Assembly: GCA_950097015.1 (NCBI GenBank)
Contig: CATNEN010000029.1
Location: 1,984,001 to 2,048,000, forward strand
DNA length: 64,000 nucleotides
Origin: Macrostomum hystrix
Lineage: Eukaryota; Animalia; Platyhelminthes
Direction: 5' to 3'
The position numbers and the translations under genes were made by a program. Shown piece by piece: positions 30,503 to 58,132 of the stretch. Below the pieces are notes generated by a model, which worked only from the letters and a program-made list of their open reading frames with translations, did no database searches and had not been told where the DNA came from. The number at the start of each line of letters is the position of its first letter. Within the stretch, counting starts at the first letter, position 1.

Positions 30503-30518
30503 GTGAGTTGTTCATTGT

Positions 30519-30725: not shown

Positions 30726-31226
30726 GTTGCCTACGAGGCGTGGAAGTTGCGCGAGTTGAAGCGGCTGAAGCGCGACAGAGAGGAGCGCGAGGCCCGCCAG
30801 CGAGAACAGGAGGAGCTGCAGCGGGTGCGCAATATGACCGAGGAGGAGCGCCAGGCCGAGCTGCGCCGTCGGCCAAAGATCGTCGACAACAAGGCCGACA
30901 AGGGCAAGTACAAGTATCTGCAGAAGTACTATCACCGCGGCGCCTTCTTCCTTGACGGCGACAACGACCTGCTGCGTCGCGATGTCAGCGGGCCGACGCT
31001 TGAGGATCACTTCGACAAGAGCGTACTGCCCAAGGTTATGCAGGTGAAAAACTTTGGTCGCGCCGGCCGCACTAAATATACTCACCTGGTGGACCAGGAC
31101 ACCACTGGTACTGACAACCCGTGGGCTGTGGACAGCGCTCAGGCTCAGCGCTTCCACTCTGTCAGGGGTGGCGGCATGCGGCCACTGACGCATTATCGGT
31201 CCGGCGCTAAGCGATCCGATGTTTGA
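30726..31226 (+). CDS. MFAP1: MFAP1 exon 2 (conserved C-terminal domain)
   Basis: Acceptor ccgctcag|; [59 protein letters not shown]. Confidence 0.96.
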
Positions 31227-34259: not shown

Positions 34260-34429
34260 GTGAGCATCGGTGCTTCCCTGTTGAAGTTGCCATTGCTCAA
34301 TATACGCTCGGAGCATGCAGATTGACTCTGTCATGCAGGTGTTTGACAGCTCCATATCGGAGTTTCAAAGTGTCTCTGTCACAATTGCAGCATTTAAACT
34401 CCTTCCTCAATCTTCCTCGCACTACGCAG

Positions 34430-35076
34430 GCGACCTGCTCCTAGACGGCGAAGGCTACGCTGTGATGATGGCCTGGGAGCAGCCGCTGATGGAGCAGCAT
34501 GCCCGCTACGTGTGTCCCAGGCCCGGCTTGCGAGTTCTTAACGTTGGCTTCGGCATGGGCATCGTGGACACGGAGCTGCAGAAACTAGGTCCAGCTGAGC
34601 ACACCATTATTGAGGCCCACCCGGATGTTCTCAACCGCATGCGCGACCAGGGCTGGCCCGACAGGCCCGGTGTCCGCATCGTGCCCGGCCGTTGGCAGGA
34701 TGTCATCGCCCAGCTGGGACCATTCGACGGTGTCTTCTTTGATACGTACGCCGAGGACGACCTAGATCTGCACTCGTTCCACGCCCACCTGCCCAGACTG
34801 CTGGCCCCAGGCGGCCGGTACGCATTCTACAACGGCATGTGCCCGGACAATGTCTTCTTTCACGCTGTAGCCTGCGAAGTTGTCCGACTGCGCCTACTGA
34901 GGCTGGGCCTGCGCTGCAGCTTCAGGCCGCTGCCTGTCCGCGTTGACGACTCTAAACTCTGGCAGGGGGTGCGTGATCGCTACTGGCACTTCGACACCTA
35001 CTACCTGCCAGAGGTGTGCCGGCCGGAGGGCGACGAAGCCTCCACAGCTGCAGCCGTCGCTGAAACTTGGAATTGA
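34430..35076 (+). CDS. RMT2: RMT2-family arginine N-methyltransferase exon 2 (GAMT-like SAM domain)
   Basis: Acceptor actacgcag| in phase 1; VMMAWEQPLM, VLNVGFGMGIVD, HTIIEAHPDV, FDGVFFDTYAE, YAFYNG. Joined product ~385 aa. Confidence 0.9.
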
Positions 35077-37345: not shown

Positions 37346-37582
37346 TCAGGCGCAGATGATGGCCGCATCAGACGGCTGCACCAGTTGCACGTACAGCTGC
37401 GGATCGTCCTGCGCCAGCTGCAGCGCCCTGGAGCTGCGGTAGCAGAATCGCTTGCCGCTGCCGTCGGAGCCGACTTCGACGCACTCTGCTACGCTGGCGC
37501 AATTGAAGCGAAACACGTGCTTAGCGTTGTAGGCCTGCTGTTCCAGGTAGGGGAATTCCCGCGGACTGCCCATGTGCTCCAT
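37346..37582 (-). CDS. Secreted Cys-rich protein A, exon 2 (terminal)
   Basis: Acceptor ccgttgtcgcag| in phase 0; MEHMGSPREFPYLEQQAYNAKHVFRFNCASVAECVEV...QPSDAAIICA*; GC-rich coding-like composition. Confidence 0.7.
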   Translation of the reverse strand: MEHMGSPREFPYLEQQAYNAKHVFRFNCASVAECVEVGSDGSGKRFCYRSSRALQLAQDDPQLYVQLVQPSDAAIICA

Positions 37583-37619
37583 CTGCGACAACGGGTGGGT
37601 GGCGAGGCAAGGATTGACA

Positions 37620-37956
37620 ACTTCAGGAATATTTGATGGCTAACTTCAGGACTACTTCATGGCCTAACCTCAGGACTACTTCATGGCCTAACCTCAGGAC
37701 TACTTCATGGCCTAACCTCAGAACTACTTTATGGCCTAACTTCAGGACTACTTCATGGCCTAACTTCAGGAATACTTCATGGCTAACTTCAGGACTACTT
37801 CATGGCCTAACTTCAGGAAAACTTCATGGCTAACTTCAGTACTACTTCATGGCCTAACTTCAGGAATACTTCATGGCTAACTTCAGTACTACTTCATGGC
37901 CTAACTTCAGGAATACTTCATGGCTAACTTCAGGAATACTTCATGGCTAACTTCAG
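37620..37956. repeat. 24-bp minisatellite (ctaacttcaggactacttcatggc) filling the intron of secreted gene A
   Basis: ORF repeats every 8 aa (NLRTTSWP); some 23-bp variants. Confidence 0.93.
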
Positions 37957-38031
37957 TAGTGAGATTTCAAGGTATGCCTATCAACAGCCAGTGGGATTTT
38001 GATCGGAATAATCGGAAAACGCCAAGCAAAC

Positions 38032-38331
38032 CTTGCAACGGATGTCCTCCGACGGCACGTCGGGCCGAACCCGCCTGCAGTCCAGCTTCGGCGGACAGAC
38101 GGTGGCCGAATAGACAAAATCCGAGCTGTCGTGAATGTAGTAGCCCACTCGACAATGCGCGTCCGTGTCGGCTGGCGAAGCGACATTGTAGACTGCCACG
38201 GATGAGCTTCCGGTGACGCCGAAAGTTAGCATCAGGATCAGCACCAGCGGCATAGCTGACAGTCTTTGTAGTCGCTGCTGCTGCTGTTGCTGCCGCATTC
38301 GTTGATCCTTCAAGCTAGATGCCATCATCAT
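38032..38331 (-). CDS. Secreted Cys-rich protein A, exon 1 (signal peptide MPLVLILMLTFGVTGSSS)
   Basis: Hydrophobic leader followed by HCRVGYY..VCPPKLDCRRVRPDVPSEDIRCK; phase-0 donor AAG|gtttgc at 38032/38031. Alternative start at 38253. Confidence 0.68.
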
Positions 38332-38401
38332 TGACAAAACAGTCTGCTAAAAGTGGAAGTCGAAAAAAAGCGTGCAATTTAGCCAGCTGATGGCCGCCAG
38401 C

Positions 38402-38408
38402 TTATATA
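38402..38408 (-). promoter_or_regulatory. Candidate TATA box of secreted gene A
   Basis: TATATAA ~70 nt upstream of the first ATG. Confidence 0.4.
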
Positions 38409-39135
38409 GATGCGGATCAGATTAGGCTGGGGCGGAGTGGGAGAAGGTGGGGTGGAGAGTAAACTCTTCTCCAAGTCGTTGAGCGGGAAAGTATTTTTTG
38501 TTCAATTTGGAGCCGAAGGAATCGACTTTGATCGAAGAATTTATTTCCATTGCTTCCTTTGCGAGTTCGGTTGCTTTTTAGAGTTTGTTTCTTTTTTTGG
38601 ACGAAGAAGAGGACGGCTTATCTATGAGTGGCTCAACCAGAGATTAACGATGGACCGAGTCTGTCGCTCTCCATTGCTTTCAAAGCATGCGCCAGATGCC
38701 TGCAGGTCGATTTTTGAGCACCGCCGCCCACGCACCGTGGCTCCGCAATTCTTTTTTTATCAACTTCCTTCCGCCTCGCTCTTAGTGGCTAACCAGCTTT
38801 TGGTTCGAAGCCACCTTCATTATTTTGCTTTTTATTTCTTATCTCACAGCTGGCAAGGCACTGGCTCTGTGTTTGAATAATCCTTTTAAGCTCGGTTGCT
38901 GTGCCACTTTTGGACGATAAGAATTGGACAAACTTCGACAAAAGCAGACCTGAAATGAGATCAACTTCTGGTCATTAAACGGTTGCCGGCTCTGAGCTCA
39001 TGAGATCATCAGCTATGACCTCTGAGTGTCACTTAATTTTGGGAAGGGTTTCCTGGTGCTAGTTTCCTGATTCCATTTGAAGTATTAATTTAGCCGCTAT
39101 TCGTTTCACGACGAATCAGGACAAATCGACCCTTT

Positions 39136-42100
39136 GAGGAAGATTCGTCTCTGTTGTGAGGAATATTCGTCTCTTTTGGTGAGGAACGGCTCGCTACATC
39201 GACCGTCTTTTTGATGATGCACGAGCACGTCAGCACGAAGCACGTGAAGCACGTCAGAGACCTTGCCCTGAAGCGCGCGATTTGACGCCCCCCCTTTTTT
39301 GACCACTTGTGGTCGGCGCGGGGCGTGAGATTATTATTATTATTATTTGGTGAGGAAGATTCGTCTCTTTTGGTAAGGAAGATTCGTCCCTTTTGGTAAG
39401 GAAGATTCGTCTCTTTTGGTAAGGAAGATTCGTCTCTTTTGGTAAGGAAGATTCGTCTCTTTTGGTAAGGAAGATTCGTCTCTTTTGGTAAGGAAGATTC
39501 GTCTCTTTTGGTAAGGAAGATTCGTCTCTTTTGGTAAGGAAGATTCGTCCCTTTTGGTAAGGAAGATTCGTCTCTTTTGGTAAGGAAGATTCGTCTCTTT
39601 TGGTAAGGAAGATTCGTCTCTTTTGGTGGGGAAGATTCGTCTCTTTTGGTAAGGAAGATTCGTCTCTTTTGGTAAGGAAGATTCGTCTCTTTTGGTAAGG
39701 AAGATTCGTCTCTTTTGGTAAGGAAGATTCGTCTCTTTTTGTGAGGAAGATTCGTCCCTTTTGGTAAGGAAGATTCGTCTCTTTTGGTAAGGAAGATTCG
39801 TCCCTTTTGGTAAGGAAGATTCGTCTCTTTTGGTAAGGAAGATTCGTCTCTTTTGGTAAGGAAGATTCGTCTCTTTTGGTAAGGAAGATTCGTCTCTTTT
39901 GGTAAGGAAGATTCGTCTCTTTTTGTGAGGAAGATTCGTCCCTTTTGGTAAGGAAGATTCGTCTCTTTTGGTAAGGAAGATTCGTCCCTTTTGGTAAGGA
40001 AGATTCGTCTCTTTTGGTAAGGAAGATTCGTCCCTTTTGGTAAGGAAGATTCGTCTCTTTTGGTAAGGAAGATTCGTCTCTTTTGGTAAGGAAGATTCGT
40101 CTCTTTTGGTGAGGAAGATTCGTCTCTTTTTGTGAGGAAGATTCGTCCCTTTTGGTAAGGAAGATTCGTCTCTTTTGGTAAGGAAGATTCGTCCCTTTTG
40201 GTAAGGAAGATTCGTCTCTTTTGGTAAGGAAGATTCGTCTCTTTTGGTAAGGAAGATTCGTCCCTTTTGGTAAGGAAGATTCGTCTCTTTTGGTAAGGAA
40301 GATTCGTCTCTTTTGGTAAGGAAGATTCGTCTCTTTTGGTAAGGAAGATTCGTCTCTTTTGGTAAGGAAGATTCGTCTCTTTTGGTAAGGAAGATTCGTC
40401 TCTTTTGGTAAGGAAGATTCGTCTCTTTTGGTAAGGAAGATTCGTCTCTTTTTGTGAGGAAGATTCGTCCCTTTTGGTAAGGAAGATTCGTCTCTTTTGG
40501 TAAGGAAGATTCGTCCCTTTTGGTAAGGAAGATTCGTCTCTTTTGGTAAGGAAGATTCGTCTCTTTTGGTAAGGAAGATTCGTCCCTTTTGGTAAGGAAG
40601 ATTCGTCTCTTTTGGTAAGGAAGATTCGTCTCTTTTGGTAAGGAAGATTCGTCTCTTTTGGTGAGGAAGATTCGTCTCTTTTTGTGAGGAAGATTCGTCC
40701 CTTTTGGTAAGGAAGATTCGTCTCTTTTGGTAAGGAAGATTCGTCCCTTTTGATAAGGAAGATTCGTCTCTTTTGGTAAGGAAGATTCGTCTCTTTTGGT
40801 AAGGAAGATTCGTCTCTTTTGGTGAGGAAGATTCGTCTCTTTTGGTAAGGAAGATTCGTCTCTTTTGGTAAGGAAGATTCGTCTCTTTTTGTGAGGAAGA
40901 TTCGTCCCTTTTGGTAAGGAAGATTCGTCTCTTTTGGTAAGGAAGATTCGTCCCTTTTGGTAAGGAAGATTCGTCTCTTTTGGTAAGGAAGATTCGTCTC
41001 TTTTGGTGAGGAAGATTCGTCTCTTTTGGTAAGGAAGATTCGTCTCTTTTTGTGAGGAAGATTCGTCTCTTTTGGTAAGGAAGATTCGTCTCTTTTTGTG
41101 AGGAAGATTCGTCTCTTTTTGTGGGGAAGATTCGTCTCTTTTGGTAAGGAAGATTCGTCTCTTTTTGTGAGGAAGATTCGTCTCTTTTGGTAAGGAAGAT
41201 TCGTCTCTTTTTGTGAGGAAGATTCGTCTCTTTTTGTGAGAAAGATTCGTCTCTTTTGGTGGGGAAGATTCGTCTCTTTTGGTAAGGAAGATTCGTCTCT
41301 TTTGGTAAGGAAGATTCGTCTCTTTTGGTGGGGAAGATTCGTCTCTTTTGGTAAGGAAGATTCGTCTCTTTTGGTAAGGAAGATTCGTCTCTTTTGGTAA
41401 GGAAGATTCGTCTCTTTTGGTAAGGAAGATTCGTCTCTTTTGGTAAGGAAGATTCGTCTCTTTTGGTGGGGAAGATTCGTCTCTTTTGGTAAGGAATATT
41501 CGTCTCTTTTGGTAAGGAAGATTCGTCTCTTTTGGTAAGGAAGATTCGTCTCTTTTGGTAAGGAAGATTCGTCTCTTTTGGTAAGGAAGATTCGTCTCTT
41601 TTTGTGAGGAAGATTCGTCCCTTTTGGTAAGGAAGATTCGTCTCTTTTGGTAAGGAAGATTCGTCCCTTTTGGTAAGGAAGATTCGTCTCTTTTGGTAAG
41701 GAAGATTCGTCCCTTTTGGTAAGGAAGATTCGTCTCTTTTGGTAAGGAAGATTCGTCTCTTTTGGTAAGGAAGATTCGTCTCTTTTGGTGAGGAAGATTC
41801 GTCTCTTTTTGTGAGGAAGATTCGTCCCTTTTGGTAAGGAAGATTCGTCTCTTTTGGTAAGGAAGATTCGTCCCTTTTGGTAAGGAAGATTCGTCTCTTT
41901 TGGTAAGGAAGATTCGTCTCTTTTGGTAAGGAAGATTCGTCCCTTTTGGTAAGGAAGATTCGTCTCTTTTGGTAAGGAAGATTCGTCTCTTTTGGTAAGG
42001 AAGATTCGTCTCTTTTGGTAAGGAAGATTCGTCTCTTTTGGTAAGGAAGATTCGTCTCTTTTGGTAAGGAAGATTCGTCTCTTTTGGTAAGGAAGATTCG

Positions 42101-45100
42101 TCTCTTTTGGTAAGGAAGATTCGTCTCTTTTTGTGAGGAAGATTCGTCCCTTTTGGTAAGGAAGATTCGTCTCTTTTGGTAAGGAAGATTCGTCCCTTTT
42201 GGTAAGGAAGATTCGTCTCTTTTGGTAAGGAAGATTCGTCTCTTTTGGTAAGGAAGATTCGTCCCTTTTGGTAAGGAAGATTCGTCTCTTTTGGTAAGGA
42301 AGATTCGTCTCTTTTGGTAAGGAAGATTCGTCTCTTTTGGTGAGGAAGATTCGTCTCTTTTTGTGAGGAAGATTCGTCCCTTTTGGTAAGGAAGATTCGT
42401 CTCTTTTGGTAAGGAAGATTCGTCCCTTTTGATAAGGAAGATTCGTCTCTTTTGGTAAGGAAGATTCGTCTCTTTTGGTAAGGAAGATTCGTCTCTTTTG
42501 GTGAGGAAGATTCGTCTCTTTTGGTAAGGAAGATTCGTCTCTTTTGGTAAGGAAGATTCGTCTCTTTTTGTGAGGAAGATTCGTCCCTTTTGGTAAGGAA
42601 GATTCGTCTCTTTTGGTAAGGAAGATTCGTCCCTTTTGGTAAGGAAGATTCGTCTCTTTTGGTAAGGAAGATTCGTCTCTTTTGGTGAGGAAGATTCGTC
42701 TCTTTTGGTAAGGAAGATTCGTCTCTTTTTGTGAGGAAGATTCGTCTCTTTTGGTAAGGAAGATTCGTCTCTTTTTGTGAGGAAGATTCGTCTCTTTTTG
42801 TGGGGAAGATTCGTCTCTTTTGGTAAGGAAGATTCGTCTCTTTTTGTGAGGAAGATTCGTCTCTTTTGGTAAGGAAGATTCGTCTCTTTTTGTGAGGAAG
42901 ATTCGTCTCTTTTTGTGAGAAAGATTCGTCTCTTTTGGTGGGGAAGATTCGTCTCTTTTGGTAAGGAAGATTCGTCTCTTTTGGTAAGGAAGATTCGTCT
43001 CTTTTGGTGGGGAAGATTCGTCTCTTTTGGTAAGGAAGATTCGTCTCTTTTGGTAAGGAAGATTCGTCTCTTTTGGTAAGGAAGATTCGTCTCTTTTGGT
43101 AAGGAAGATTCGTCTCTTTTGGTAAGGAAGATTCGTCTCTTTTGGTGGGGAAGATTCGTCTCTTTTGGTAAGGAATATTCGTCTCTTTTGGTAAGGAAGA
43201 TTCGTCTCTTTTGGTAAGGAAGATTCGTCTCTTTTGGTAAGGAAGATTCGTCTCTTTTGGTAAGGAAGATTCGTCTCTTTTTGTGAGGAAGATTCGTCCC
43301 TTTTGGTAAGGAAGATTCGTCTCTTTTGGTAAGGAAGATTCGTCTCTTTTGGTAAGGAAGATTCGTCTCTTTTGGTAAGGAAGATTCGTCCCTTTTGGTA
43401 AGGAAGATTCGTCTCTTTTTGTGAGGAAGATTCGTCTCTTTTTGTGAGGAAGATTCGTCTCTTTTGGTAAGGAAGATTCGTCTCTTTTTGTGAGAAAGAT
43501 TCGTCTCTTTTGGTAAGGAAGATTCGTCTCTTTTTGTGAGGAAGATTCGTCTGTTGTTGTGAGGAAGATTCGTCTCTTTTTGTGAGGAAGATTCGTCTCT
43601 TTTGGTGGGGAAGATTCGTCTCTTTTGGTAAGGAAGATTCGTCTCTTTTGTGAGGAAGATTCGTCTCTTTTTGTGAGGAAGATTCGTCTCTTTTGTTAAG
43701 GAAGATTCGTCTCTTTTTGTGAGCAAGATTCGTCTCTTTTTGTGAGGAAGATTCGTCTCCTTTTGTGAGGAAGATTCGTCCATTGGTGAGGAAGATTCGT
43801 CCATTGGTAGGGAAGATTCGTCTCTTTTGGTAAGGAAGATTCGTCTCTTTTGTGAGGAAGATTCGTCTCTTTTGGTAAGGAAGATTCGTCTCTTTTGGTA
43901 AGGAAGATTCGTCTCTTTTTGTGAGGAAGATTCGTCCCTTTTGGTAAGGAAGATTCGTCTCTTTTGGTAAGGAAGATTCGTCTCTTTTGGTAAGGAAGAT
44001 TCGTCTCTTTTGGTAAGGAAGATTCGTCCCTTTTGGTAAGGAAGATTCGTCTCTTTTTGTGAGGAAGATTCGTCTCTTTTTGTGAGGAAGATTCGTCTCT
44101 TTTGGTAAGGAAGATTCGTCTCTTTTTGTGAGAAAGATTCGTCTCTTTTGTTAAGGAAGATTCGTCTCTTTTTGTGAGAAAGATTCGTCTGTTGTTGTGA
44201 GGAAGCTTCGTCTCTTTTTGTGAGGAAGATTCGTCTCTTTTTGTGAGGAAGATTCGTCTCTTTTGGTAAGGAAGATTCGTCTCTTTTTGTGAGGAAGATT
44301 CGTCTCTTTTTGTGAGGAAGATTCGTCTCTTTTTGTGAGGAAGATTCGTCTCTTTTGTTAAGGAAGATTCGTCTCTTTTTGTGAGGAAGATTCGTCTCTT
44401 TTTGTGAGGAAGATTCGTCTCTTTTTGTGAGGAAGATTCGTCCATTGGTGAGGAAGATTCGTCCATTGGTAGGGAAGATTCGTCTCTTTTGGTAAGGAAG
44501 ATTCGTCTCTTTTGTGAGGAAGATTCGTCTCTTTTGGTAAGGAAGATTCGTCTCTTTTGGTAAGGAAGATTCGTCTCTTTTGGTGGGGAAGATTCGTCTC
44601 TTTTGGTAAGGAAGATTCGTCTCTTTTGGTAAGGAAGATTCGTCTCTTTTGGTAAGGAAGATTCGTCCCTTTTGGTAAGGAAGATTCGTCCCTTTTGGTA
44701 AGGAAGATTCGTCCCTTTTGGTAAGGAAGATTCGTCTCTTTTTGTGAGGAATATTCGTCTCTTTTTGTGAGGAAGATTCGTCTCTTTTGGTAAGGAAGAT
44801 TCGTCTCTTTTTGTGAGGAAGATTCGTCTCTTTTTGTGAGGAATATTCGTCTCTTTTTGTGAGGAAGATTCGTCTCTTTTTGTGAGGAAGATTCGTCCCT
44901 TTTGGTAAGGAAGATTCGTCTCTTTTGGTAAGGAAGATTCGTCTCTTTTGGTAAGGAAGATTCGTCTCTTTTGGTAAGGAAGATTCGTCCCTTTTGGTAA
45001 GGAAGATTCGTCTCTTTTTGTGAGGAAGATTCGTCTCTTTTTGTGAGGAAGATTCGTCTCTTTTGGTAAGGAAGATTCGTCTCTTTTTGTGAGAAAGATT

Positions 45101-48100
45101 CGTCTCTTTTGGTAAGGAAGATTCGTCTCTTTTTGTGAGAAAGATTCGTCTGTTGTTGTGAGGAAGATTCGTCTCTTTTTGTGAGGAAGATTCGTCTCTT
45201 TTGGTGGGGAAGATTCGTCTCTTTTGGTAAGGAAGATTCGTCTCTTTTGTGAGGAAGATTCGTCTCTTTTTGTGAGGAAGATTCGTCTCTTTTTGTGAGG
45301 AAGATTCGTCTCTTTTGTTAAGGAAGATTCGTCTCTTTTTGTGAGGAAGATTCGTCTCTTTTTGTGAGGAAGATTCGTCTCTTTTTGTGAGGAAGATTCG
45401 TCCATTGGTGAGGAAGATTCGTCCATTGGTAGGGAAGATTCGTCTCTTTTGGTAAGGAAGATTCGTCTCTTTTGTGAGGAAGATTCGTCTCTTTTGGTAA
45501 GGAAGATTCGTCTCTTTTGGTAAGGAAGATTCGTCTCTTTTGGTGGGGAAGATTCGTCTCTTTTGGTAAGGAAGATTCGTCTCTTTTGGTAAGGAAGATT
45601 CGTCTCTTTTGGTAAGGAAGATTCGTCTCTTTTGGTAAGGAAGATTCGTCTCTTTTTGTGAGGAAGATTCGTCCCTTTTGGTAAGGAAGATTCGTCTCTT
45701 TTGGTAAGGAAGATTCGTCTCTTTTGGTAAGGAAGATTCGTCTCTTTTGGTAAGGAAGATTCGTCCCTTTTGGTAAGGAAGATTCGTCTCTTTTTGTGAG
45801 GAAGATTCGTCTCTTTTTGTGAGGAAGATTCGTCTCTTTTGGTAAGGAAGATTCGTCTCTTTTTGTGAGAAAGATTCGTCTCTTTTGGTAAGGAAGATTC
45901 GTCTCTTTTTGTGAGAAAGATTCGTCTGTTGTTGTGAGGAAGCTTCGTCTCTTTTTGTGAGGAAGATTCGTCTCTTTTTGTGAGGAAGATTCGTCTCTTT
46001 TGGTAAGGAAGATTCGTCTCTTTTTGTGAGGAAGATTCGTCTCTTTTTGTGAGGAAGATTCGTCTCTTTTTGTGAGGAAGATTCGTCTCTTTTGTTAAGG
46101 AAGATTCGTCTCTTTTTGTGAGGAAGATTCGTCTCTTTTTGTGAGGAAGATTCGTCTCTTTTTGTGAGGAAGATTCGTCCATTGGTGAGGAAGATTCGTC
46201 CATTGGTAGGGAAGATTCGTCTCTTTTGGTAAGGAAGATTCGTCTCTTTTGTGAGGAAGATTCGTCTCTTTTGGTAAGGAAGATTCGTCTCTTTTGGTAA
46301 GGAAGATTCGTCTCTTTTGGTGGGGAAGATTCGTCTCTTTTGGTAAGGAAGATTCGTCTCTTTTGGTAAGGAAGATTCGTCTCTTTTGGTAAGGAAGATT
46401 CGTCCCTTTTGGTAAGGAAGATTCGTCCCTTTTGGTAAGGAAGATTCGTCTCTTTTGGTAAGGAAGATTCGTCTCTTTTGGTAAGGAAGATTCGTCTCTT
46501 TTGGTAAGGAAGATTCGTCTCTTTTGGTAAGGAAGATTCGTCCATTGGTGAGGAAGATTCGTCCATTGGTAGGGAAGATTCGTCTCTTTTGGTAAGGAAG
46601 ATTCGTCTCTTTTGGTAAGGAAGATTCGTCCATTGGTAGGGAAGATTCGTCTCTTTTGGTAAGGAAGATTCGTCTCTTTTGGTAAGGAAGATTCGTCCAT
46701 TGGTGAGGAAGATTCGTCCATTGGTAGGGAAGATTCGTCTCTTTTGGTAAGGAAGATTCGTCTCTTTTGGTGAGGAAGATTCGTCTCTTTTGGTAAGGAA
46801 GATTCGTCTCTTTTGGTAAGGAAGATTCGTCTCTTTTGGTGGGGAAGATTCGTCCCTTTTGGTAAGGAAGATTCGTCCCTTTTGGTAAGGAAGATTCGTC
46901 CCTTTTGGTAAGGAAGATTCGTCTCTTTTGGTAAGGAAGATTCGTCTCTTTTTGTGAGAAAGATTCGTCTCTTTTGGTAAGGAAGATTCGTCTCTTTTTG
47001 TGAGGAAGATTCGTCTGTTGTTGTGAGGAAGATTCGTCTCTTTTTGTGAGGAAGATTCGTCTCTTTTGGTGGGGAAGATTCGTCTCTTTTGGTAAGGAAG
47101 ATTCGTCTCTTTTGTGAGGAAGATTCGTCTCTTTTTGTGAGGAAGATTCGTCTCTTTTGTTAAGGAAGATTCGTCTCTTTTTGTGAGCAAGATTCGTCTC
47201 TTTTTGTGAGGAAGATTCGTCTCCTTTTGTGAGGAAGATTCGTCCATTGGTGAGGAAGATTCGTCCATTGGTAGGGAAGATTCGTCTCTTTTGGTAAGGA
47301 AGATTCGTCTCTTTTGTGAGGAAGATTCGTCTCTTTTGGTAAGGAAGATTCGTCTCTTTTGGTAAGGAAGATTCGTCTCTTTTTGTGAGGAAGATTCGTC
47401 CCTTTTGGTAAGGAAGATTCGTCTCTTTTGGTAAGGAAGATTCGTCTCTTTTGGTAAGGAAGATTCGTCTCTTTTGGTAAGGAAGATTCGTCCCTTTTGG
47501 TAAGGAAGATTCGTCTCTTTTTGTGAGGAAGATTCGTCTCTTTTTGTGAGGAAGATTCGTCTCTTTTGGTAAGGAAGATTCGTCTCTTTTTGTGAGAAAG
47601 ATTCGTCTCTTTTGTTAAGGAAGATTCGTCTCTTTTTGTGAGAAAGATTCGTCTGTTGTTGTGAGGAAGCTTCGTCTCTTTTTGTGAGGAAGATTCGTCT
47701 CTTTTTGTGAGGAAGATTCGTCTCTTTTGGTAAGGAAGATTCGTCTCTTTTTGTGAGGAAGATTCGTCTCTTTTTGTGAGGAAGATTCGTCTCTTTTTGT
47801 GAGGAAGATTCGTCTCTTTTGTTAAGGAAGATTCGTCTCTTTTTGTGAGGAAGATTCGTCTCTTTTTGTGAGGAAGATTCGTCTCTTTTTGTGAGGAAGA
47901 TTCGTCCATTGGTGAGGAAGATTCGTCCATTGGTAGGGAAGATTCGTCTCTTTTGGTAAGGAAGATTCGTCTCTTTTGTGAGGAAGATTCGTCTCTTTTG
48001 GTAAGGAAGATTCGTCTCTTTTGGTAAGGAAGATTCGTCTCTTTTGGTGGGGAAGATTCGTCTCTTTTGGTAAGGAAGATTCGTCTCTTTTGGTAAGGAA

Positions 48101-51100
48101 GATTCGTCTCTTTTGGTAAGGAAGATTCGTCCCTTTTGGTAAGGAAGATTCGTCCCTTTTGGTAAGGAAGATTCGTCCCTTTTGGTAAGGAAGATTCGTC
48201 TCTTTTTGTGAGGAATATTCGTCTCTTTTTGTGAGGAAGATTCGTCTCTTTTGGTAAGGAAGATTCGTCTCTTTTTGTGAGGAAGATTCGTCTCTTTTTG
48301 TGAGGAATATTCGTCTCTTTTTGTGAGGAAGATTCGTCTCTTTTTGTGAGGAAGATTCGTCCCTTTTGGTAAGGAAGATTCGTCTCTTTTGGTAAGGAAG
48401 ATTCGTCTCTTTTGGTAAGGAAGATTCGTCTCTTTTGGTAAGGAAGATTCGTCCCTTTTGGTAAGGAAGATTCGTCTCTTTTTGTGAGGAAGATTCGTCT
48501 CTTTTTGTGAGGAAGATTCGTCTCTTTTGGTAAGGAAGATTCGTCTCTTTTTGTGAGAAAGATTCGTCTCTTTTGGTAAGGAAGATTCGTCTCTTTTTGT
48601 GAGAAAGATTCGTCTGTTGTTGTGAGGAAGATTCGTCTCTTTTTGTGAGGAAGATTCGTCTCTTTTGGTGGGGAAGATTCGTCTCTTTTGGTAAGGAAGA
48701 TTCGTCTCTTTTGTGAGGAAGATTCGTCTCTTTTTGTGAGGAAGATTCGTCTCTTTTTGTGAGGAAGATTCGTCTCTTTTGTTAAGGAAGATTCGTCTCT
48801 TTTTGTGAGGAAGATTCGTCTCTTTTTGTGAGGAAGATTCGTCTCTTTTTGTGAGGAAGATTCGTCCATTGGTGAGGAAGATTCGTCCATTGGTAGGGAA
48901 GATTCGTCTCTTTTGGTAAGGAAGATTCGTCTCTTTTGTGAGGAAGATTCGTCTCTTTTGGTAAGGAAGATTCGTCTCTTTTGGTAAGGAAGATTCGTCT
49001 CTTTTGGTGGGGAAGATTCGTCTCTTTTGGTAAGGAAGATTCGTCTCTTTTGGTAAGGAAGATTCGTCTCTTTTGGTAAGGAAGATTCGTCTCTTTTGGT
49101 AAGGAAGATTCGTCTCTTTTTGTGAGGAAGATTCGTCCCTTTTGGTAAGGAAGATTCGTCTCTTTTGGTAAGGAAGATTCGTCTCTTTTGGTAAGGAAGA
49201 TTCGTCTCTTTTGGTAAGGAAGATTCGTCCCTTTTGGTAAGGAAGATTCGTCTCTTTTTGTGAGGAAGATTCGTCTCTTTTTGTGAGGAAGATTCGTCTC
49301 TTTTGGTAAGGAAGATTCGTCTCTTTTTGTGAGAAAGATTCGTCTCTTTTGGTAAGGAAGATTCGTCTCTTTTTGTGAGAAAGATTCGTCTGTTGTTGTG
49401 AGGAAGCTTCGTCTCTTTTTGTGAGGAAGATTCGTCTCTTTTTGTGAGGAAGATTCGTCTCTTTTGGTAAGGAAGATTCGTCTCTTTTTGTGAGGAAGAT
49501 TCGTCTCTTTTTGTGAGGAAGATTCGTCTCTTTTTGTGAGGAAGATTCGTCTCTTTTGTTAAGGAAGATTCGTCTCTTTTTGTGAGGAAGATTCGTCTCT
49601 TTTTGTGAGGAAGATTCGTCTCTTTTTGTGAGGAAGATTCGTCCATTGGTGAGGAAGATTCGTCCATTGGTAGGGAAGATTCGTCTCTTTTGGTAAGGAA
49701 GATTCGTCTCTTTTGTGAGGAAGATTCGTCTCTTTTGGTAAGGAAGATTCGTCTCTTTTGGTAAGGAAGATTCGTCTCTTTTGGTGGGGAAGATTCGTCT
49801 CTTTTGGTAAGGAAGATTCGTCTCTTTTGGTAAGGAAGATTCGTCTCTTTTGGTAAGGAAGATTCGTCCCTTTTGGTAAGGAAGATTCGTCCCTTTTGGT
49901 AAGGAAGATTCGTCTCTTTTGGTAAGGAAGATTCGTCTCTTTTGGTAAGGAAGATTCGTCTCTTTTGGTAAGGAAGATTCGTCTCTTTTGGTAAGGAAGA
50001 TTCGTCCATTGGTGAGGAAGATTCGTCCATTGGTAGGGAAGATTCGTCTCTTTTGGTAAGGAAGATTCGTCTCTTTTGGTAAGGAAGATTCGTCCATTGG
50101 TAGGGAAGATTCGTCTCTTTTGGTAAGGAAGATTCGTCTCTTTTGGTAAGGAAGATTCGTCCATTGGTGAGGAAGATTCGTCCATTGGTAGGGAAGATTC
50201 GTCTCTTTTGGTAAGGAAGATTCGTCTCTTTTGGTGAGGAAGATTCGTCTCTTTTGGTAAGGAAGATTCGTCTCTTTTGGTAAGGAAGATTCGTCTCTTT
50301 TGGTGGGGAAGATTCGTCTCTTTTGGTAAGGAAGATTCGTCTCTTTTGGTAAGGAAGATTCGTCTCTTTTGGTAAGGAAGATTCGTCCCTTTTGGTAAGG
50401 AAGATTCGTCCCTTTTGGTAAGGAAGATTCGTCTCTTTTGGTAAGGAAGATTCGTCTCTTTTTGTGAGGAAGATTCGTCCCTTTTGGTAAGGAAGATTCG
50501 TCTCTTTTGGTAAGGAAGATTCGTCCCTTTTGGTAAGGAAGATTCGTCCCTTTTGGTAAGGAAGATTCGTCCCTTTTGGTAAGGAAGATTCGTCTCTTTT
50601 TGTGAGGAATATTCGTCTCTTTTTGTGAGGAAGATTCGTCTCTTTTGGTAAGGAAGATTCGTCTCTTTTTGTGAGGAATATTCGTCTCTTTTTGTGAGGA
50701 AGATTCGTCTCTTTTGGTAAGGAAGATTCGTCTCTTTTTGTGAGAAAGATTCGTCTCTTTTGGTAAGGAAGATTCGTCTCTTTTTGTGAGAAAGATTCGT
50801 CTGTTGTTGTGAGGAAGATTCGTCTCTTTTTGTGAGGAAGATTCGTCTCTTTTGGTGGGGAAGATTCGTCTCTTTTGGTAAGGAAGATTCGTCTCTTTTG
50901 TGAGGAAGATTCGTCTCTTTTTGTGAGGAAGATTCGTCTCTTTTGTTAAGGAAGATTCGTCTCTTTTTGTGAGGAAGATTCGTCTCTTTTTGTGAGGAAG
51001 ATTCGTCTCTTTTTGTGAGGAAGATTCGTCCATTGGTGAGGAAGATTCGTCCATTGGTAGGGAAGATTCGTCTCTTTTGGTAAGGAAGATTCGTCTCTTT

Positions 51101-51450
51101 TTGTGAGGAAGATTCGTCCATTGGTGAGGAAGATTCGTCCATTGGTGTGGAAGATTCGTCCATTGGTGAGGAAGATTCGTCCATTGGTGTGGAAGATTCG
51201 TCCATTGGTGAGGAAGATTCGTCCATTGGTGTGGAAGATTCGTCCATTGGTGTGGAAGATTCGTCCATTGGTGTGGAAGATTTGTCCATTGGTGTGGAAG
51301 ATTCGTCCATTGGTGTGGAAGATTCGTCCATTGGTGAGGAAGATTCGTCCATTGGTGTGGAAGATTCGTCCATTGGTGAGGAAGATTCGTCCATTGGTGT
51401 GGAAGATTCGTCCATTTGTGTGGAAGATTCGTCCATTGGTGTGGAAGATT
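39136..51450. repeat. ~12.3 kb array of a 23-bp unit (ggtaaggaagattcgtctctttt), ~525 copies, with higher-order duplications and a 21-bp terminal variant
   Basis: Period 23 verified; ORF translations repeat every 23 aa (3 units); 21-bp variant gtccattggtgtggaagattc at ~51110-51450. Confidence 0.99.
39187..39347 (+). mobile_element. 161-bp insertion with an (ATT)6 tail, splitting the first units of the 23-bp array
   Basis: Flanked by tggtgaggaa at 39177-39186 and 39348-39357 (candidate target-site duplication). Confidence 0.55.
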
Positions 51451-51879
51451 CCTCTGTTTTGAGAAGTGTTCATCCCATTTAGGAAAACAATTATTTAGGA
51501 ATGTTGCTGCTGAATTCAGAAGCATGGTCTAAAAGAATTCCCATTATATGTCATGTTACTCGGGACTCTAGCGAAATATAAAATTTTCTAAAGCCTAATC
51601 TAGAACAATGATTCGTTTTTAATGAAGCATCACCGCTGCATTCATAAACATTTTTACTTATAGACTCAGGAATCCGCATGCATTGCCGATTCGCATTGTG
51701 CTTAAAATTACCGAACCATTCAGACGGTCTTGTCGGCTCTTCGTCAATTCAGTTTAGAAATTAACTCGTAGCAACCAAGATCCCCTTGATAAGTCATGCT
51801 TTCCCATCGATGACTCCTTGGATACCCCTTGGATATATCATTCCACACCTTGACAAAGCTGCCCTCTCAATATTTTATG

Positions 51880-52740
51880 CAACCCCCTCAATTTTTGCTT
51901 CCTCTCGATAATTCATACTACACCATTGATAATTTAGCTACCTCTCGGAAATTTATGCTTCCTTCTCGATTTTTCATGCTACCCCCCAGATAATTTGGAC
52001 CATACCTCGATAATTCATTCTACTTCCTCGATAATTCATTCTACTTCCTCGATAATTCATTCTACTTCCTCGATAATTCATTCTACTTCCTCGATAATTC
52101 ATTCTACTTCCTCGATAATTCATTCTACTTCCTCGATAATTCATTCTACTTCCTCGATAAAACATTCTACTTCCTCGATAAATCATTCTACTTCCTCGAT
52201 AATTCATTCTCGATAATTCATGCTTCCCTTAAGCCTACCCCTTCAATAATTTTGTCTACCCCTTCGATGATTCATGATGCCACTTCGATAGTTCATGCTT
52301 CCCCCTCCATAATTCATGCTTCCCCTCCATAATTCATGCTTCCCCTTTGATAGTTCATGCTTCCCCCTTGATAGTTCATGCTTGCCCCTTGATGGTTCAT
52401 GCTTCCCCCTTGATAGTTCATGCTTCCCCCTTGATAGTTCATGCTTCCCCCTTGATAGTTCATGCTTCCCCCTTGATAGTTCATGCTTCCCCCTTGATAG
52501 TTCATGCTTCCCCCTTGATAGTTCATGCTTCCCCCTTGATAGTTCATGCTTTCCACTCGGTAATTCATGCTTCCCCTCCATAATTCATGCTTCCCTCTCG
52601 ATAATTCATGCTTCCCTCTCGATAATTCATGCTTCCCTCTCGATAATTCATGCTTCCCTCTTGATAATTCATGCTTCCCTGTCGATAATTCATGCTTCCC
52701 TCTCGATAATTCATGCTTTCCTCTCGATAATTTATGCTTG
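51880..52740. repeat. Series of related 21-bp arrays (cctcgataattcattctactt; ttcatgcttcccccttgatag; cgataattcatgcttccctct)
   Basis: ORFs repeat every 7 aa; shared gata(a/g)ttcat core. Confidence 0.93.
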
Positions 52741-52810
52741 CCATCAATTTCTTCAATGACCTACAATTAGTCACTCAAAATGGCACTAGTCACAATGGTA
52801 ATGGCCTACA

Positions 52811-53142
52811 ATGGGGGTCGGTGGCAGAGTGGTTATCGCGTTTGCCTTTCGCACCAAGGTCCCTAAGTTCGATTCCACGGCGAGGCCACAGTTATTTAGA
52901 GCGCAGCGGCGGAGAGAAGGCTTGGGGGCTTGTCGTGCAATTTACGCCCTTAAGGGCCAACCTCCAAGGCACAGTGAGAGTGTACACTGCCTGACGATAG
53001 GGCAGATGTACACACCTGTGTGAGCGTGTGCCTGCGTAAAGTATCTGTGTGCGTGTGTGCTCAGGAGTCAGCGAAACGGGCAGAATTGCCTCCTCGCTGG
53101 CTGCGGGTCTAGTGTCACCAAATTATGTGCCACTGCCCGCAG
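52811..53142 (+). mobile_element. Full-length tRNA-derived SINE flanked by 51-bp imperfect direct repeats
   Basis: A box TGGCAGAGTGG and B box GTTCGATTCC in the head; two further copies in the window; repeats at 52760-52810 and 53143-53193. Confidence 0.88.
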
Positions 53143-53654
53143 CCTACAATTAGTCGGACAAAATGGCACCCGTCACAATGGGAGTGGCCTACAGTACATG
53201 AAAGATTATTCCCACTGCTTCTCGTCGAACTCAATTAGTATAATAGCCAATGCAGTCAAGTTGCTAATCTCCACCCCGAATCTACAGATTAGTGCCGCCA
53301 GCTCTATCAGGATATCAGGTTCAAAGCTGCACCTGTTCTTGCAATTAAATTGTTAATCTGCAGTCTGTCCATTCGTGTGGGCGAAGGCGGAGCTCGATTG
53401 TGATAAATCAAAGAAATTAACCGGATGCACTGTAACTGCAGTGAATGGATGTTAACGGCCATGCTGTGAGTGGGCTAGCTTGCTTCAGATCAAACCCGGT
53501 GCGTTCGTCACGTTATATGCAAATATCAATGATCAATTGAGTCACCTTCGGGCTATGAACAGTTTCGGTGCTTTTTTGAATAAAAGAAGATTCGTGTAGC
53601 AGTTGCTAAGAAATTAATTCATTGCCAGACGTCTTACATCCGTCTCAAATGCTT

Positions 53655-55965
53655 TTGGAATCGAAGCAGGAACTGCAGTTGGAATCGAAGCAGGAACTGT
53701 ATTTAGAATCTAAGCAGGAACTGTATTTAGAATCGAAGTAGGACCTGCAGTTGGAATCGAAGCAGGAACTGTATTTAGAATCGATGCAGGAACTGCAGTT
53801 GGAATCGAATCGGGAACTGTAGTTGGAATCGATGCAGGAACTGCAGTTGGAATCGAGGCAGGAACTGTAGTTGGAATCGATGCAGGAACTGCAGTTGGAA
53901 TCGAGGCAGGAACTGTATTTAGAATCGAAGTAGGAACTGCAGTTGGAATCGAAGCAGGAACTGTATTTGGAATCGAAGTAGGAACTGCAGTTGGAATCGA
54001 AGCAGGAACTGCAGTTGGAATCGAAGCAGGAACTGTATTTAGAATCGAAGTAGGACCTGCAGTTGGAATCGAGGCAGGAACTGCAGTTGGAATCGAAGCA
54101 GGAACTGCAGTTGGAATCGAATCGGGAACTGTAGTTGGAATCGATGCAGGAACTGCAGTTGGAATCGAGGCAGGAACTGCAGTTGGAATCAAGGCAGGAC
54201 CTGCAGTTGGAATCGAAGCAGGAACTGTATTTAGAATCGAAGCAGGAACTGCAGTTGGAATCGAATCGGGAACTGTAGTTGGAATCGATGCAGGAACTGC
54301 AGTTGGAATCGAAGCAGGAACTGCAGTTGGAATCGAAGCAGGAACTGTAGTTGGAATCGATGCAGGAACTGCAGTTGGAATCGAGGCAGGAACTGTAGTT
54401 GGAATCGATGCAGGAACTGCAGTTGGAATCGAGGCAGGAACTGTATTTAGAATCGAAGTAGGAACTGCAGTTGGAATCGAAGCAGGAACTGCAGTTGGAA
54501 TCGAAGCAGGAACTGTATTTAGAATCGAAGTAGGACCTGCAGTTGGAATCGAAGCAGGAACTGCAGTTGGAATCGAAGCAGGAACTGTATTTAGAATCGA
54601 AGTAGGAACTGTAGTTGGAATCGAAGCAGGAACTGCAGTTGGAATCGAGGCAGGAACTGTATTTAGAATCGAAGTAGGAACTGCAGTTGGAATCGAAGCA
54701 GGAACTGCAGTTGGAATCGAAGCAGGAACTGTATTTAGAATCGAAGTAGGACCTGCAGTTGGAATCGAGGCAGGAACTGCAGTTGGAATCAAGGCAGGAC
54801 CTGCAGTTGGAATCGAGGCAGGAACTGCAGTTGGAATCGAGGCAGGAACTGTAGTTGGAATCGAAGTAGGAACTGCAGTTGGAATCGAAACAGGAACTGC
54901 AGTTGGAATCGAAGTAGGAACTGCAGTTGGAATCGAGGCAGGAACTGTAGTTGGAATCGAAGTAGGAACTGCAGTTGGAATCGAAACAGGAACTGCAGTT
55001 GGAATCGAGGCAGGAACTGTAGTTGGAATCGAAGTAGGAACTGCAGTTGGAATCGAAACAGGAACTGCAGTTGGAATCGAGGCAGGAACTGCAGTTGGAA
55101 TCGAGGCAGGAACTGCAGTTGGAATCAAGGCAGGAACTGTAGTTGGAATCGAAGTAGGACCTGCAGTTGGAATCGAAGCAGGAACTGCAGTTGGAATCGA
55201 AGTAGGACCTGCAGTTGGAATCGAAGTAGGACCTGCAGTTGGAATCGAAGCAGGAACTGCAGTTGGAATCGAATCGGGAACTGTAATTGGAATCGATGCA
55301 GGAACTGCAGTTGGAATCGAGGCAGGAACTGCAGTTGGAATCAAGGCAGGACCTGCAGTTGGAATCGAAGCAGGAACTGTATTTAGAATCGAAGCAGGAA
55401 CTGCAGTTGGAATCGAATCGGGAACTGTAGTTGGAATCGATGCAGGAACTGCAGTTGGAATCGAAGCAGGAACTGCAGTTGGAATCGAATCGGGAACTGT
55501 ATTTAGAATCGATGCAGGAACTGCAGTTGGAATCGAAGCAGGAACTGTAGTTGGAATCGATGCAGGAACTGCAGTTGGAATCGAGGCAGGAACTGCAGTT
55601 GGAATCAAGGCAGGACCTGCAGTTGGAATCGAAGCAGGAACTGTATTTAGAATCGAAGCAGGAACTGCAGTTGGAATCGAATCGGGAACTGTAGTTGGAA
55701 TCGATGCAGGAACTGCAGTTGGAATCGAATCGGGAACTGTAGTTGGAATCGATGCAGGAACTGCAGTTGGAATCGAGGCAGGAACTGTATTTAGAATCGA
55801 AGTAGGAACTGCAGTTGGAATCGAAGTAGGAACTGCAGTTGGAATCGAAGCAGGAACTGTATTTAGAATCGAAGTAGGACCTGCAGTTGGAATCGAAGCA
55901 GGAACTGTATTTAGAATCGAAGTAGGAACTGCAGTTGGAATCGAAGCAGGAACTGTATTTAGAGT
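53655..55965. repeat. 24-bp minisatellite (~96 copies; agcaggaactgcagttggaatcga)
   Basis: ORF repeats every 8 aa (SSCFDSNC); many units contain the palindrome AACTGCAGTT. Confidence 0.98.
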
Positions 55966-56509
55966 CGAACATCAAAGAATAAAGTCTGAGTACAGATTTG
56001 CATTCTCAGTTAAAAAACGCTCTTTTATTTTTTTCTGAAAAAGAATTAGACGCAAATTTTTGAACCATCCATTTTTGAATTTTTGAATGTTATATTTTTG
56101 AGTAATTGGATAGTTACTCTTTAGCGTGATATGCAACTACTTTATGCGATATTTTAAGGTCTCACCGACTGAATTCCACACGCAGGTATATTTAGATCAT
56201 TTTATCTATCGATTTAGATCATTGGTTTCTCTAAAAACAATTTAATTATCTAGTTACATTCAGGGCTGCTTATCTAAACACATGTTATTGGTCTGGTCTG
56301 GTCTGGGAACCGCCACCTCAATCTAAATACCAATCTCACTCCGCACGGGTAGCTCTCATTGGCGGTCAGCACCCTGACCAATCATATTTCAGCTTAGATA
56401 AAGTAAACTTAAATCTGGAAACCTATTTCTTTGTTGTCTGCCTTAATTTAATTTAACACGACTATTGCTTTAAAAATCAATTTAGCGTTGCACAATCAGC
56501 GCCAACCAA

Positions 56510-56716
56510 TCAGAGATCGACTAGACGGCGAATGCAGGCCAAATCGTGCGGCTGGCAGCAGCCAACCATCTCCTGCGCGTAGATGAGGGCGCCGTCCTCA
56601 GGCGAGTAGCCTGGATGCAGGAGCAGGCCCTGACACTGCCTGTCGGTGATGCACTCGCTGCGAATGTACTGCACAACACTGCCATAACCCGGTTGGATAA
56701 TTAGACGCTTCGAGAT
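56510..56716 (-). CDS. Secreted Cys-rich protein B, exon 3 (terminal)
   Basis: Acceptor ttctcgccaatgcag| in phase 0; ISKRLIIQPGYGSVVQYIRSECITDRQCQG...GCCQPHDLACIRRLVDL*. Confidence 0.8.
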   Translation of the reverse strand: MSKRLIIQPGYGSVVQYIRSECITDRQCQGLLLHPGYSPEDGALIYAQEMVGCCQPHDLACIRRLVDL

Positions 56717-57191
56717 CTGCATTGGCGAGAAAATGCACTCTTAGTCTGGTACATTATTAAAACGGATTCATAGTCTAGACAGAGTTTTCGTACAGTTTCA
56801 TTGTAAATTTGTTGAGTATGATAGATTGAAACAGCTAGTCAGATTAGTGGATAACTAATTCTATATATTAATGAAGTTGAAGGCTTTGATGTCAACTTTG
56901 ATTCCAAAGTCCAACTAAAAGGCGCCATTGCGTGAATCGTTCTTTAAGCCCCGCAAAGTCTGTGTTATTCTCTGCAATAGTATGAAGCATTTCCTCTTAT
57001 AGTGTCTGGGCTGAGTGTATTTCCTGGAATCAAACAAAAAACCCGCATGACCTAAGAATTAGCAGAAATAGAAACTATAAGGATAAAGGAAATCCGTGTT
57101 ACCCTAGGGCGTCAAGGTAATTTCAAGAAAGTTTTCTCAAGAAAGAGAAAAAGCTACTTTGTTGATATTCAAAGATAACTAAGTAATTTAC

Positions 57192-57328
57192 CTGGCACTT
57201 GATGTCTGTCTCGGGCAAATCCTTCAGGTGTTTGCACTCGGCGAACATTGGCAGACGCGGCTGCAGATCATATTTTCGGTCGAAGATCTCCACACCTTGG
57301 GGACACGAGACGATGGCAGCGCTGCGAT
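57192..57328 (-). CDS. Secreted Cys-rich protein B, exon 2
   Basis: Acceptor tatcaaacag| (phase 1), donor CAG|gtaaat (phase 0); DRSAAIVSCPQGVEIFDRKYDLQPRLPMFAECKHLKDLPETDIKCQ; 137 nt keeps the frame. Confidence 0.8.
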
Positions 57329-57383
57329 CTGTTTGATAATAGTTTGAGGAATTCGAGTGGTTTGTGAAGGTCCCTCAAAACAA

Positions 57384-58030
57384 ATCACCTGACAGACACT
57401 CCCGGCTGAACCATCACACTCACCTGACAGACACTCCCAGATGAACCATCACTCACCTGACAGACACTCCCAGATGAACCATCACTCACCTGACAGACAC
57501 TCCCGGCTGAACCATCACTCACCTGACAGACACTCCCAGATGAACCATCACTCACCTGACAGACACTCCCGGCTGAACCATCACACTCACCTGACAGACA
57601 CTCCGAGATGAACCATCACTCACCTGACAGACACTTTCAGATGAACCATCACACTCACCTGACAGACACTCCCGGCTGAACCATCACTCACCTGACAGAC
57701 ACTCCCGGCTGAACCATCACTCACCTGACAGACACTCCCGGCTGAACCATCACTCACCTGAAAGACACTCCCAGCTGAACCATCACTCACCTGACAGACA
57801 CTTTCAGATGAACCATCACACTCACCTGACAGACACTCCCGGCTGAACCATCACTCACCTGACAGACACTCCCGGCTGAACCATCACTCACCTGACAGAC
57901 ACTCCCGGCTGAACCATCACTCACCTGAAAGACACTCCCAGCTGAACCATCACTCACCTGACAGACACTCCCAGCTGAACCATCACGCACCTGACAGACA
58001 CCCACGGCTGAACCATCACTCACCCGACAG
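57384..58030. repeat. 33-bp minisatellite (~20 copies; tcacctgacagacactcccggctgaaccatcac) in intron 1 of gene B
   Basis: ORF repeats every 11 aa (VCQVSDGSAGS); some 35-bp variants. Confidence 0.96.
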
Positions 58031-58077
58031 ACAACACATCTCACTTGATCGACTTAAGGCAGGTTTAGATTACTCAC

Positions 58078-58132
58078 CCGAGCAGAAGGCCATGCAGATG
58101 ACAGTCAGGAGTAGTGAAGCACGATGGGCCAT
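58078..58132 (-). CDS. Secreted Cys-rich protein B, exon 1 (signal peptide MAHRASLLLTVICMAFCS)
   Basis: ATG at 58132; 55 nt; donor G|gtgagt in phase 1, matching exon 2. Total product 132 aa. Confidence 0.8.

Follow-up and report, generated by a model that had tools for sequence, protein, structure and literature searches.

Secreted single-domain proteins of the Ly6/uPAR (LU) three-finger type, such as SLURP-1/2, the water-soluble Lynx proteins and the three-finger toxins, are the closest described counterparts of the genes considered here, and flatworms are known to have LU proteins of their own, for example Schistosoma SmLy6B. The LU domain is defined by 10 cysteines, or by eight where, as is common, the 2-3 pair has been lost; Cys8 and Cys9 are adjacent (a CC pair), and an asparagine "invariably" follows the last cysteine (PMC6600238). 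LU genes share a plan in which a signal-peptide exon, closed by a phase-1 intron, is followed by two domain exons that are separated by an internal intron at the tip of loop 2, and they lie in small clusters (PMC6600238). The present analysis compares with these systems two minus-strand genes, termed A and B, in a 64,000-nucleotide (nt) stretch of the genome of the flatworm Macrostomum hystrix (contig CATNEN010000029.1, positions 1,984,001 to 2,048,000; hereafter the window). A first-pass annotation of this DNA had described A and B as two divergent paralogues of one unrecognised family of secreted, cysteine-rich proteins, placed on either side of a satellite block.

Gene A proves to have two unlinked paralogues in the same genome, A2 and A3, and gene B has an orthologue in Macrostomum lignano. 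In the reading favoured here, which taken as a whole stands at about an even chance, A and B are genuine, TATA-driven, spliced Macrostomum genes for small, non-anchored, secreted, disulfide-rich proteins; B most likely adopts a long-looped three-finger fold, and A, one of three dispersed paralogues, is probably a distant relative of B.

Gene B and its cysteine framework

Both gene models were built by reading the minus strand, and the genes of the window were compared exon by exon. Gene B comprises three exons and encodes a protein of 132 amino acids (aa) with eight cysteines in the mature chain; this length and cysteine count, together with the minus orientation, TATA box, signal peptide and minisatellite-filled intron ascribed to the gene in the first-pass annotation, could all be read in the sequence. 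Exon 3 contributes five of the cysteines, in the pattern C-x5-C ... CC-x6-C, and ends without a hydrophobic tail of the glycosylphosphatidylinositol (GPI) type.

An exhaustive HMMER search of representative proteins with exon 3 yielded one real match, a 136-aa M. lignano protein (P0001; cluster members A0A1I8ITI6, A0A1I8ILR5 and PAA73184.1, the last corresponding to BOX15_Mlig029122g1). B and P0001 share 76% of residues over exon 2 and 79% over exon 3 (residues 69-136 of P0001), and the alignment is gap-free across both predicted junctions (..CS/D.. and ..C-Q/ISK.., the slash marking the junction), with 8/8 cysteines kept; P0006, likewise 136 aa long, shows the same 76-79% identity, cysteines and junctions. 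On these comparisons, gene B is conserved in M. lignano as a collinear orthologue of nearly the same length (136 versus 132 aa). In UniProt and NCBI this orthologue, from another species and uncharacterised, goes under no more specific label than "Secreted protein" or "hypothetical protein", with neither a family name nor a Pfam domain. Within its own genome, gene B is present as a single copy, according to searches with its exons and with P0001.

B and P0001 share the cysteine order C-x22-C-x12-C-x24-C-x5-C-x24-CC-x6-C. This is the LU order with its CC pair, which is found in B and P0001 and not in A, A2 or A3. B resembles the secreted single-domain LU proteins in its eight-cysteine order, in the adjacent CC and in having a terminal loop that is short; it likewise has no GPI tail, and its gene has three exons, a phase-1 intron past the signal peptide and a domain spread over two exons. 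The plan of signal exon, two domain exons and phase-1 first intron is also that of A2 and A3, whereas A has lost the first intron. Moreover, A and B lie on the same strand 18 kb apart, an arrangement that fits the small clusters of LU genes.

Structural comparison points in the same direction. Nearly all ESM Atlas look-alikes of P0001, for the whole and the mature chain alike, fall into uPAR/Ly6, SLURP1, LYPD6, activin/TGF-beta receptor ectodomain, DUF753 and cobra-toxin clusters, with scores of 0.76-0.84 that the tool itself rates as a lead only. When three A-family rows covering the N-terminal half were added to the alignment, AlphaFold returned for P0001 a best model of beta-rich topology with a predicted local distance difference test score (pLDDT) of 65.7 and a predicted template modelling score (pTM) of 0.58. 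Foldseek gave this model no significant E-value, and its list was dominated by three-finger proteins. In a search independent of Foldseek, against 48,161 chains, the top 15 were all LU, three-finger-toxin or receptor-ectodomain chains. The predicted structure superposes on Lynx2 (Z 5.9; 3.2 A over 78 of 86 residues) and on GPIHBP1 (Z 5.9-6.0; 2.8 A over 75 residues of 81-83), and, taken with PSCA and bucandin, its matches to LU-type structures span Z 4.8-6.0. The activin/TGF-beta receptor ectodomains, which have the three-finger toxin fold and appear among the ESM look-alikes, match the model less well (Z 3.4-4.7) than the LU proteins do; they also differ in the cysteine pattern of the ectodomain, and B lacks the transmembrane and kinase parts of these receptors.

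Several observations weigh against a three-finger fold for B. No meaningful Pfam match, whether to UPAR_LY6, Toxin_TOLIP, Activin_recp or other families, was obtained with all four exons queried or with P0001 and P0006, even at E-values as high as 10, and sequences in the PDB gave chance rows only, both for the B alignment and for the two A-family exon alignments. The residue that follows the last cysteine in B and P0001 is an isoleucine, not the asparagine of LU proteins. The loops are much longer than those of LU proteins (22, 12, 24, 5, 24 and 6 residues between cysteines), and the cysteines extend over 99 residues from first to last, more than the 60-90 residues of a complete LU domain. 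The placing of the internal intron differs as well: it lies one residue past the third cysteine and not at the loop 2 tip. In P0001 its position follows residue 68, at the start of a predicted strand (65-76), and the predicted loop 2 tip is at about residues 77-80 of the medium-confidence model; the B intron would thus stand at the base of predicted loop 2, roughly 10 residues from the tip. With an alignment of B sequences only, the AlphaFold model of P0001 reached a pLDDT of no more than 35, and with the A-family rows one of five models was usable or confident. A Z of about 6 falls short of the level that the structure-search tool considers safe. Furthermore, the ESM and AlphaFold signals may both echo the cysteine pattern, so that they would not be independent of each other.

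Three lines of evidence of lesser weight thus make up the lead: the order of the cysteines, the look-alikes from the language model and a single AlphaFold model of medium confidence. Weighed against the points above, they make it probable that B has a three-finger domain of the secreted LU type and works as one, although it is not filed here as a member of that family. The loose resemblance to three-finger/Ly6 folds noted in the first-pass annotation is upheld as a lead by the look-alikes and the model; it finds no counterpart in Pfam or in PDB sequences. A genome-wide search with PF00021 gave one weak match, which lies elsewhere than the A/B locus.

Other entries related to the B searches were set aside. 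P0002, P0003 and P0005 were rejected as relatives of B: they are bacterial repeat proteins of 2,500-3,500 aa or a repeat open reading frame (ORF), and represent low-complexity or repeat artefacts. P0004 (M. lignano A0A1I8FDG8) bears the UniProt name "40S ribosomal protein S26" and is a mis-named, 100-aa copy of the B orthologue; downstream of C-x5-C it diverges from P0001, an apparent frameshift being the cause. This copy may be a duplicate in decay that dates from the genome duplication of M. lignano, or else an error of assembly.

The first intron of gene B has a further peculiarity. Each unit of its 33-bp minisatellite (57385-58033, minus strand) reads ..GTCTGTCAG/GTGAGTGATGG.. (..TGTCAG/GTGAGT..), so that an acceptor-like site abuts a consensus donor in every unit, about 19 times within the intron. 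A unit of this kind is laid out like a recursive (zero-length-exon) splice site.

The A family and its relation to gene B

The model of gene A consists of two coding exons. The first contains a poly-Q N-terminal extension, the signal peptide and the N-terminal half of the protein with Cys1-4, and ends in phase 0 one residue past Cys4; the second encodes the C-terminal half with Cys5-8 and the protein end ..IICA. Counted from the first ATG, the protein has 178 aa; a start at Met27, which stands immediately before the hydrophobic signal core and downstream of the poly-Q stretch, would give 152 aa. The phase-1 first intron present in A2, A3 and B is missing from A, where it has been lost. The remaining intron consists almost wholly of a 24/47-bp minisatellite (37619-37956), and its donor at 38031 (AAG/GTTTGC) is weak and non-consensus, which is the weakest point of the model. 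The other features attributed to gene A beforehand (its length range, minus orientation, TATA box, signal peptide, minisatellite intron and eight mature cysteines) were all recovered by reading the sequence.

A2 (contig C38, locus L003) and A3 (contig C25, locus L002) each have a TATA box, a signal-peptide exon with a phase-1 end, a four-cysteine exon with a phase-0 end, and a four-cysteine last exon that closes with Cys-x-stop. The phase-0 end lies one residue past Cys4 in A3 and four residues past it in A2. The three proteins are only 34-45% identical, yet 8/8 cysteines are invariant, as are the flanking C-R-x-G, C-P-P and C-Y-R motifs; this invariance at such low identity indicates selection on a folded, disulfide-bonded protein. 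The framework of the family can be written C-R-x-G-h-Y-[IV]-H ... C-P-P-x3-C ... [IV]-R-C / intron / ... C-x5-C ... C-Y-R ... C-x-stop, and its members end in Cys-Ala or Cys-Pro. None of the three has a CC pair, in agreement with what the first-pass annotation had said of A.

Searches of the 220-Mb genome with each exon, with profiles and with P0001 revealed no members beyond A, A2, A3 and the single-copy B, and a six-frame hidden Markov model (HMM) scan of 164 kb around the four genes gave noise only. Word-index searches of a large protein collection with the exon-1 ORF of A and with the N-half and C-half alignments of the A family returned no A-like proteins; because these searches are word-seeded and use a length window of about 60-203 aa, absence is not proven and longer or shorter relatives are possible. 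As judged from these sequence searches, the A family is so far seen solely in this genome and has no detectable relatives. A comparison of upstream regions showed no common promoter motif past the TATA box, and neither A2 nor A3 has a B-like neighbour.

Intron 2 of A2 (L003 1247-1488, minus strand) is also made of short degenerate repeats (GTGAGT.., GGAATGGTATAAGTG..), so that repeat-filled introns seem to be a genome-wide habit and not a feature of the A/B locus.

The similarity of A and B depends on which half of the proteins is compared. All the motifs previously listed for the two proteins are present in the order given, and the phase-0 intron occupies the identical place in both genes, one residue past the cysteine of the DI[RK]C motif. 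In BLASTP of exon against exon, the one match covers 17 residues where the N-terminal exons close (E 0.002). Against an HMM of the A-family N-terminal half, B exon 2 scores 9.9 bits and its M. lignano orthologue 11.2 bits, values equalled by 1-2 of 2000 free shuffles and by 0 of 2000 shuffles with the cysteines fixed. Profile comparison of the A-family and B N-terminal halves with hhalign gives P values of 2.7e-4 to 1.7e-3. In a global alignment, a 41-residue core, running from C-x2-G-h-x-I-x-D to [DE]-C..L-P-x2-D-I-[RK]-C, requires a single one-residue gap and reaches z 5.1 against free and z 4.2 against cysteine-fixed shuffles, at most 3 of 3000 of which attain its score. The alignment stops exactly at the phase-0 intron in A, A3 and B.

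The alternative that A and B are unrelated, orphan secreted cysteine-rich genes that are merely neighbours is less probable than kinship. It would hold that the N-terminal likeness (17-41 residues) and the common intron position arose by chance or convergence, and that B may be three-finger-like and A of another fold. The C-terminal halves lend this view weight, since they are dissimilar: BLASTP of the C-terminal exons gives no match, and HMM, hhalign and global alignment scores are all at chance. Genome-wide, A-family profiles recover A, A2 and A3 in the 220 Mb and do not recover B. The cysteine frameworks differ at two to three positions, as B lacks the CPP, CYR and terminal cysteines of A, and A2 and A3 stand without a B-like neighbour. 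Additionally, another random open frame scores as high against the A-family N-terminal profile as B exon 2. However, in a set of 3,421 natural open frames taken from 164 kb, B exon 2 holds second place among those outside the family (p ~6e-4), and independent origin accounts poorly for an N-terminal similarity that survives with the cysteines fixed (0-3 of 2000-3000 shuffles), has nearly gapless spacing and stops exactly at a phase-0 intron in both A and B. A2, A3 and B also share a three-exon plan with a phase-1 first intron; A and B lie on the same strand 18 kb apart, with about 15 kb of that distance being satellite or minisatellite; and adding A rows to the alignment rescued the fold prediction of the B orthologue.

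Similarity above chance between A and B is confined to the first domain exon, where B matches the A-family framework in N-terminal half and intron position; the B C-terminal half is at chance against the family. On the alignments as they stand, common ancestry is more probable than separate origin. The N-terminal exon and the intron position that A and B have in common suggest that they are probably distant relatives from an old local duplication, after which the C-terminal half would have diverged past recognition. The earlier description of A and B as two paralogues of one family is therefore retained for the N-terminal exon (p ~1e-3) and the intron position and does not extend to the C-terminal halves; a profile of A and its paralogues also misses B in the genome. 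Likewise, the pairwise alignment is significant in the N-terminal half and not in the C-terminal half, and of the shared motifs those in the N-terminal exon exceed chance, whereas the C-x5-C and the DDPQLYVQ..QPSD / EDGALIYAQ..QPHD correspondences do not. A ten-row alignment that included the A-family C-terminal halves was misaligned by MAFFT and was not used.

Compared with LU proteins, A lacks the CC pair and has cysteines at two other positions, and these two new positions together with the missing CC imply a different final disulfide. One economical, if tentative, view is that the A family has a three-finger core in which the last disulfide was rewired. The family would then be a Macrostomum-restricted three-finger derivative that kept the first three disulfides and lost the CC...C-N end, with a 30-residue C-terminal tail tied to the new CPP cysteine of the N-terminal half, a rewired LU topology not yet described; or else it may represent an entirely new small disulfide fold.

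Gene reality and possible roles

The signal peptides and TATA boxes of A, A2, A3 and B (4/4) and their conserved cysteine frameworks accompany proteins that all end without a GPI-type or transmembrane tail. By analogy with secreted LU proteins, we infer that these proteins are soluble and extracellular and bind partners through their loops. For B in particular, the favoured reading is that it would fold as a long-looped three-finger domain and serve as a soluble extracellular binder, its loops contacting a receptor or another protein as in secreted LU proteins.

A more specific proposal, and an unlikely one at present, is that A and B are reproduction-related secretions, namely prostate or seminal-fluid proteins or other products of tail-region glands, that evolve fast under sexual selection. 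Such evolution would explain the missing homologues, and the small size, secretion and lineage restriction of the proteins are circumstantially in keeping with it. Reproduction-related genes of Macrostomum are reported to show rapid turnover and homology-detection failure (PMC10468722), and the vertebrate LU proteins include several from sperm, prostate or testis (PMC6600238). However, B does not look notably fast-evolving, given that it and the M. lignano orthologue are 76-79% identical, and the gene id Mlig029122 is absent from the full text of the expression literature and from the supplementary tables (of three papers) that were searched, which counts against the proposal.

It is very improbable that one or both genes are not functional protein genes, being decaying duplicates, chance ORFs beside satellites or, for A, a mis-modelled gene: the non-consensus GTTTGC donor of A, the want of an A-family protein in public protein sets under word-seeded, length-limited searches and the frameshifted look of the M. 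lignano copy P0004 past C-x5-C would suit this view, but all reading frames are intact, intron positions are conserved, eight cysteines are invariant in three A paralogues at 34-45% identity, TATA boxes and signal peptides occur in four genes and poly(A) signals in A and B, and M. lignano has an annotated protein at 76-79% identity to B.

The locus, its neighbours and its wider meaning

The coordinates of the two genes and of the repeat arrays between them are collected in Table 1.

Table 1. Features of genes A and B and of the intervening arrays (positions in the 64,000-nt window)
Feature	Position	Strand	Remarks
Gene B candidate TATA box TATAAAAAG	58295-58287	minus	~160 nt upstream of ATG
Gene B exon 1, coding sequence (CDS)	58132-58078	minus	ATG at 58132; signal peptide, 18 codons + 1 base; phase-1 end
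Gene B intron 1, 749 nt	58077-57329	minus	phase 1; filled by 33-bp minisatellite 57385-58033
Gene B exon 2	57328-57192	minus	phase-0 end, DIKCQ motif; N-terminal half of mature chain, three Cys
Gene B intron 2	57191-56717	minus	phase 0; CAG/GTAAAT ... AG
Gene B exon 3 CDS, 68 aa	56716-56513	minus	stop 56512-56510
Gene B poly(A) signal ATTAAA	56452-56447	minus	~60 nt past stop
24/48-bp repeats	53655-55969		between A and B
21-bp repeats	51890-52739		between A and B
23-bp satellite, ~531 copies, ~12 kb	39346-51461		between A and B
Gene A candidate TATA box TATATAAG	38408-38401	minus	~70 nt upstream of first ATG
Gene A first ATG	38331	minus	
Gene A exon 1 CDS, 100 aa	38331-38032	minus	phase-0 end, ..DIRCK
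Gene A intron, 449 nt, GT..AG	38031-37583	minus	acceptor AG at 37584-37583
Gene A exon 2 CDS, 78 aa	37582-37349	minus	stop 37348-37346
Gene A poly(A) signal AATAAA	37131-37126	minus	~215 nt past stop

The window is animal DNA rich in minisatellites, and the satellite block said to be flanked by A and B was located as the three arrays of the table. The largest, the 23-bp satellite, has 93% matches and a strong strand asymmetry (GC skew +0.33, AT skew -0.33), and its minus strand shows artefact ORFs of 2,400-2,600 aa that are free of stops.

The neighbouring genes are ordinary animal genes, all on the plus strand. Two ORFs about 10 kb apart (13659-14234 and 24600-25823) encode SMAD MH1 (E 1.5e-9) and MH2 (E 8.9e-29) domains and probably belong, as exons, to a single SMAD gene whose long linker is rich in Ser, Cys and Ala. 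Further along (29351-31226 and 33749-35076) lie a gene for the pre-mRNA processing factor MFAP1, in two ORFs, and an ankyrin-repeat/methyltransferase gene that is a candidate for the RMT2 type.

No named family matches the exons of A or B in Pfam or among PDB sequences, and to this extent the notion of an unrecognised family is sound; the B orthologue, however, was already held in UniProt and NCBI as an unnamed secreted or hypothetical protein. The notion is accordingly softened to that of a probable, very divergent three-finger-like pair together with a small lineage-restricted family. Small, secreted, cysteine-rich, lineage-restricted genes are common in flatworm genomes, and the finding of A and B is for that reason no major surprise. 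Its use is partly practical: four small secreted-protein genes are now cleanly defined in a genus in which RNA interference, in situ hybridisation and positional RNA sequencing are routine, so that their roles are cheap to test. If B is a three-finger protein, it would extend the secreted LU-like proteins by a very divergent member that comes from a free-living flatworm, has no signature asparagine and is invisible to Pfam, and would show how much of the superfamily is overlooked by sequence profiles in flatworms. The A family would then illustrate how such a scaffold can come to lack its hallmark C-terminal disulfides.

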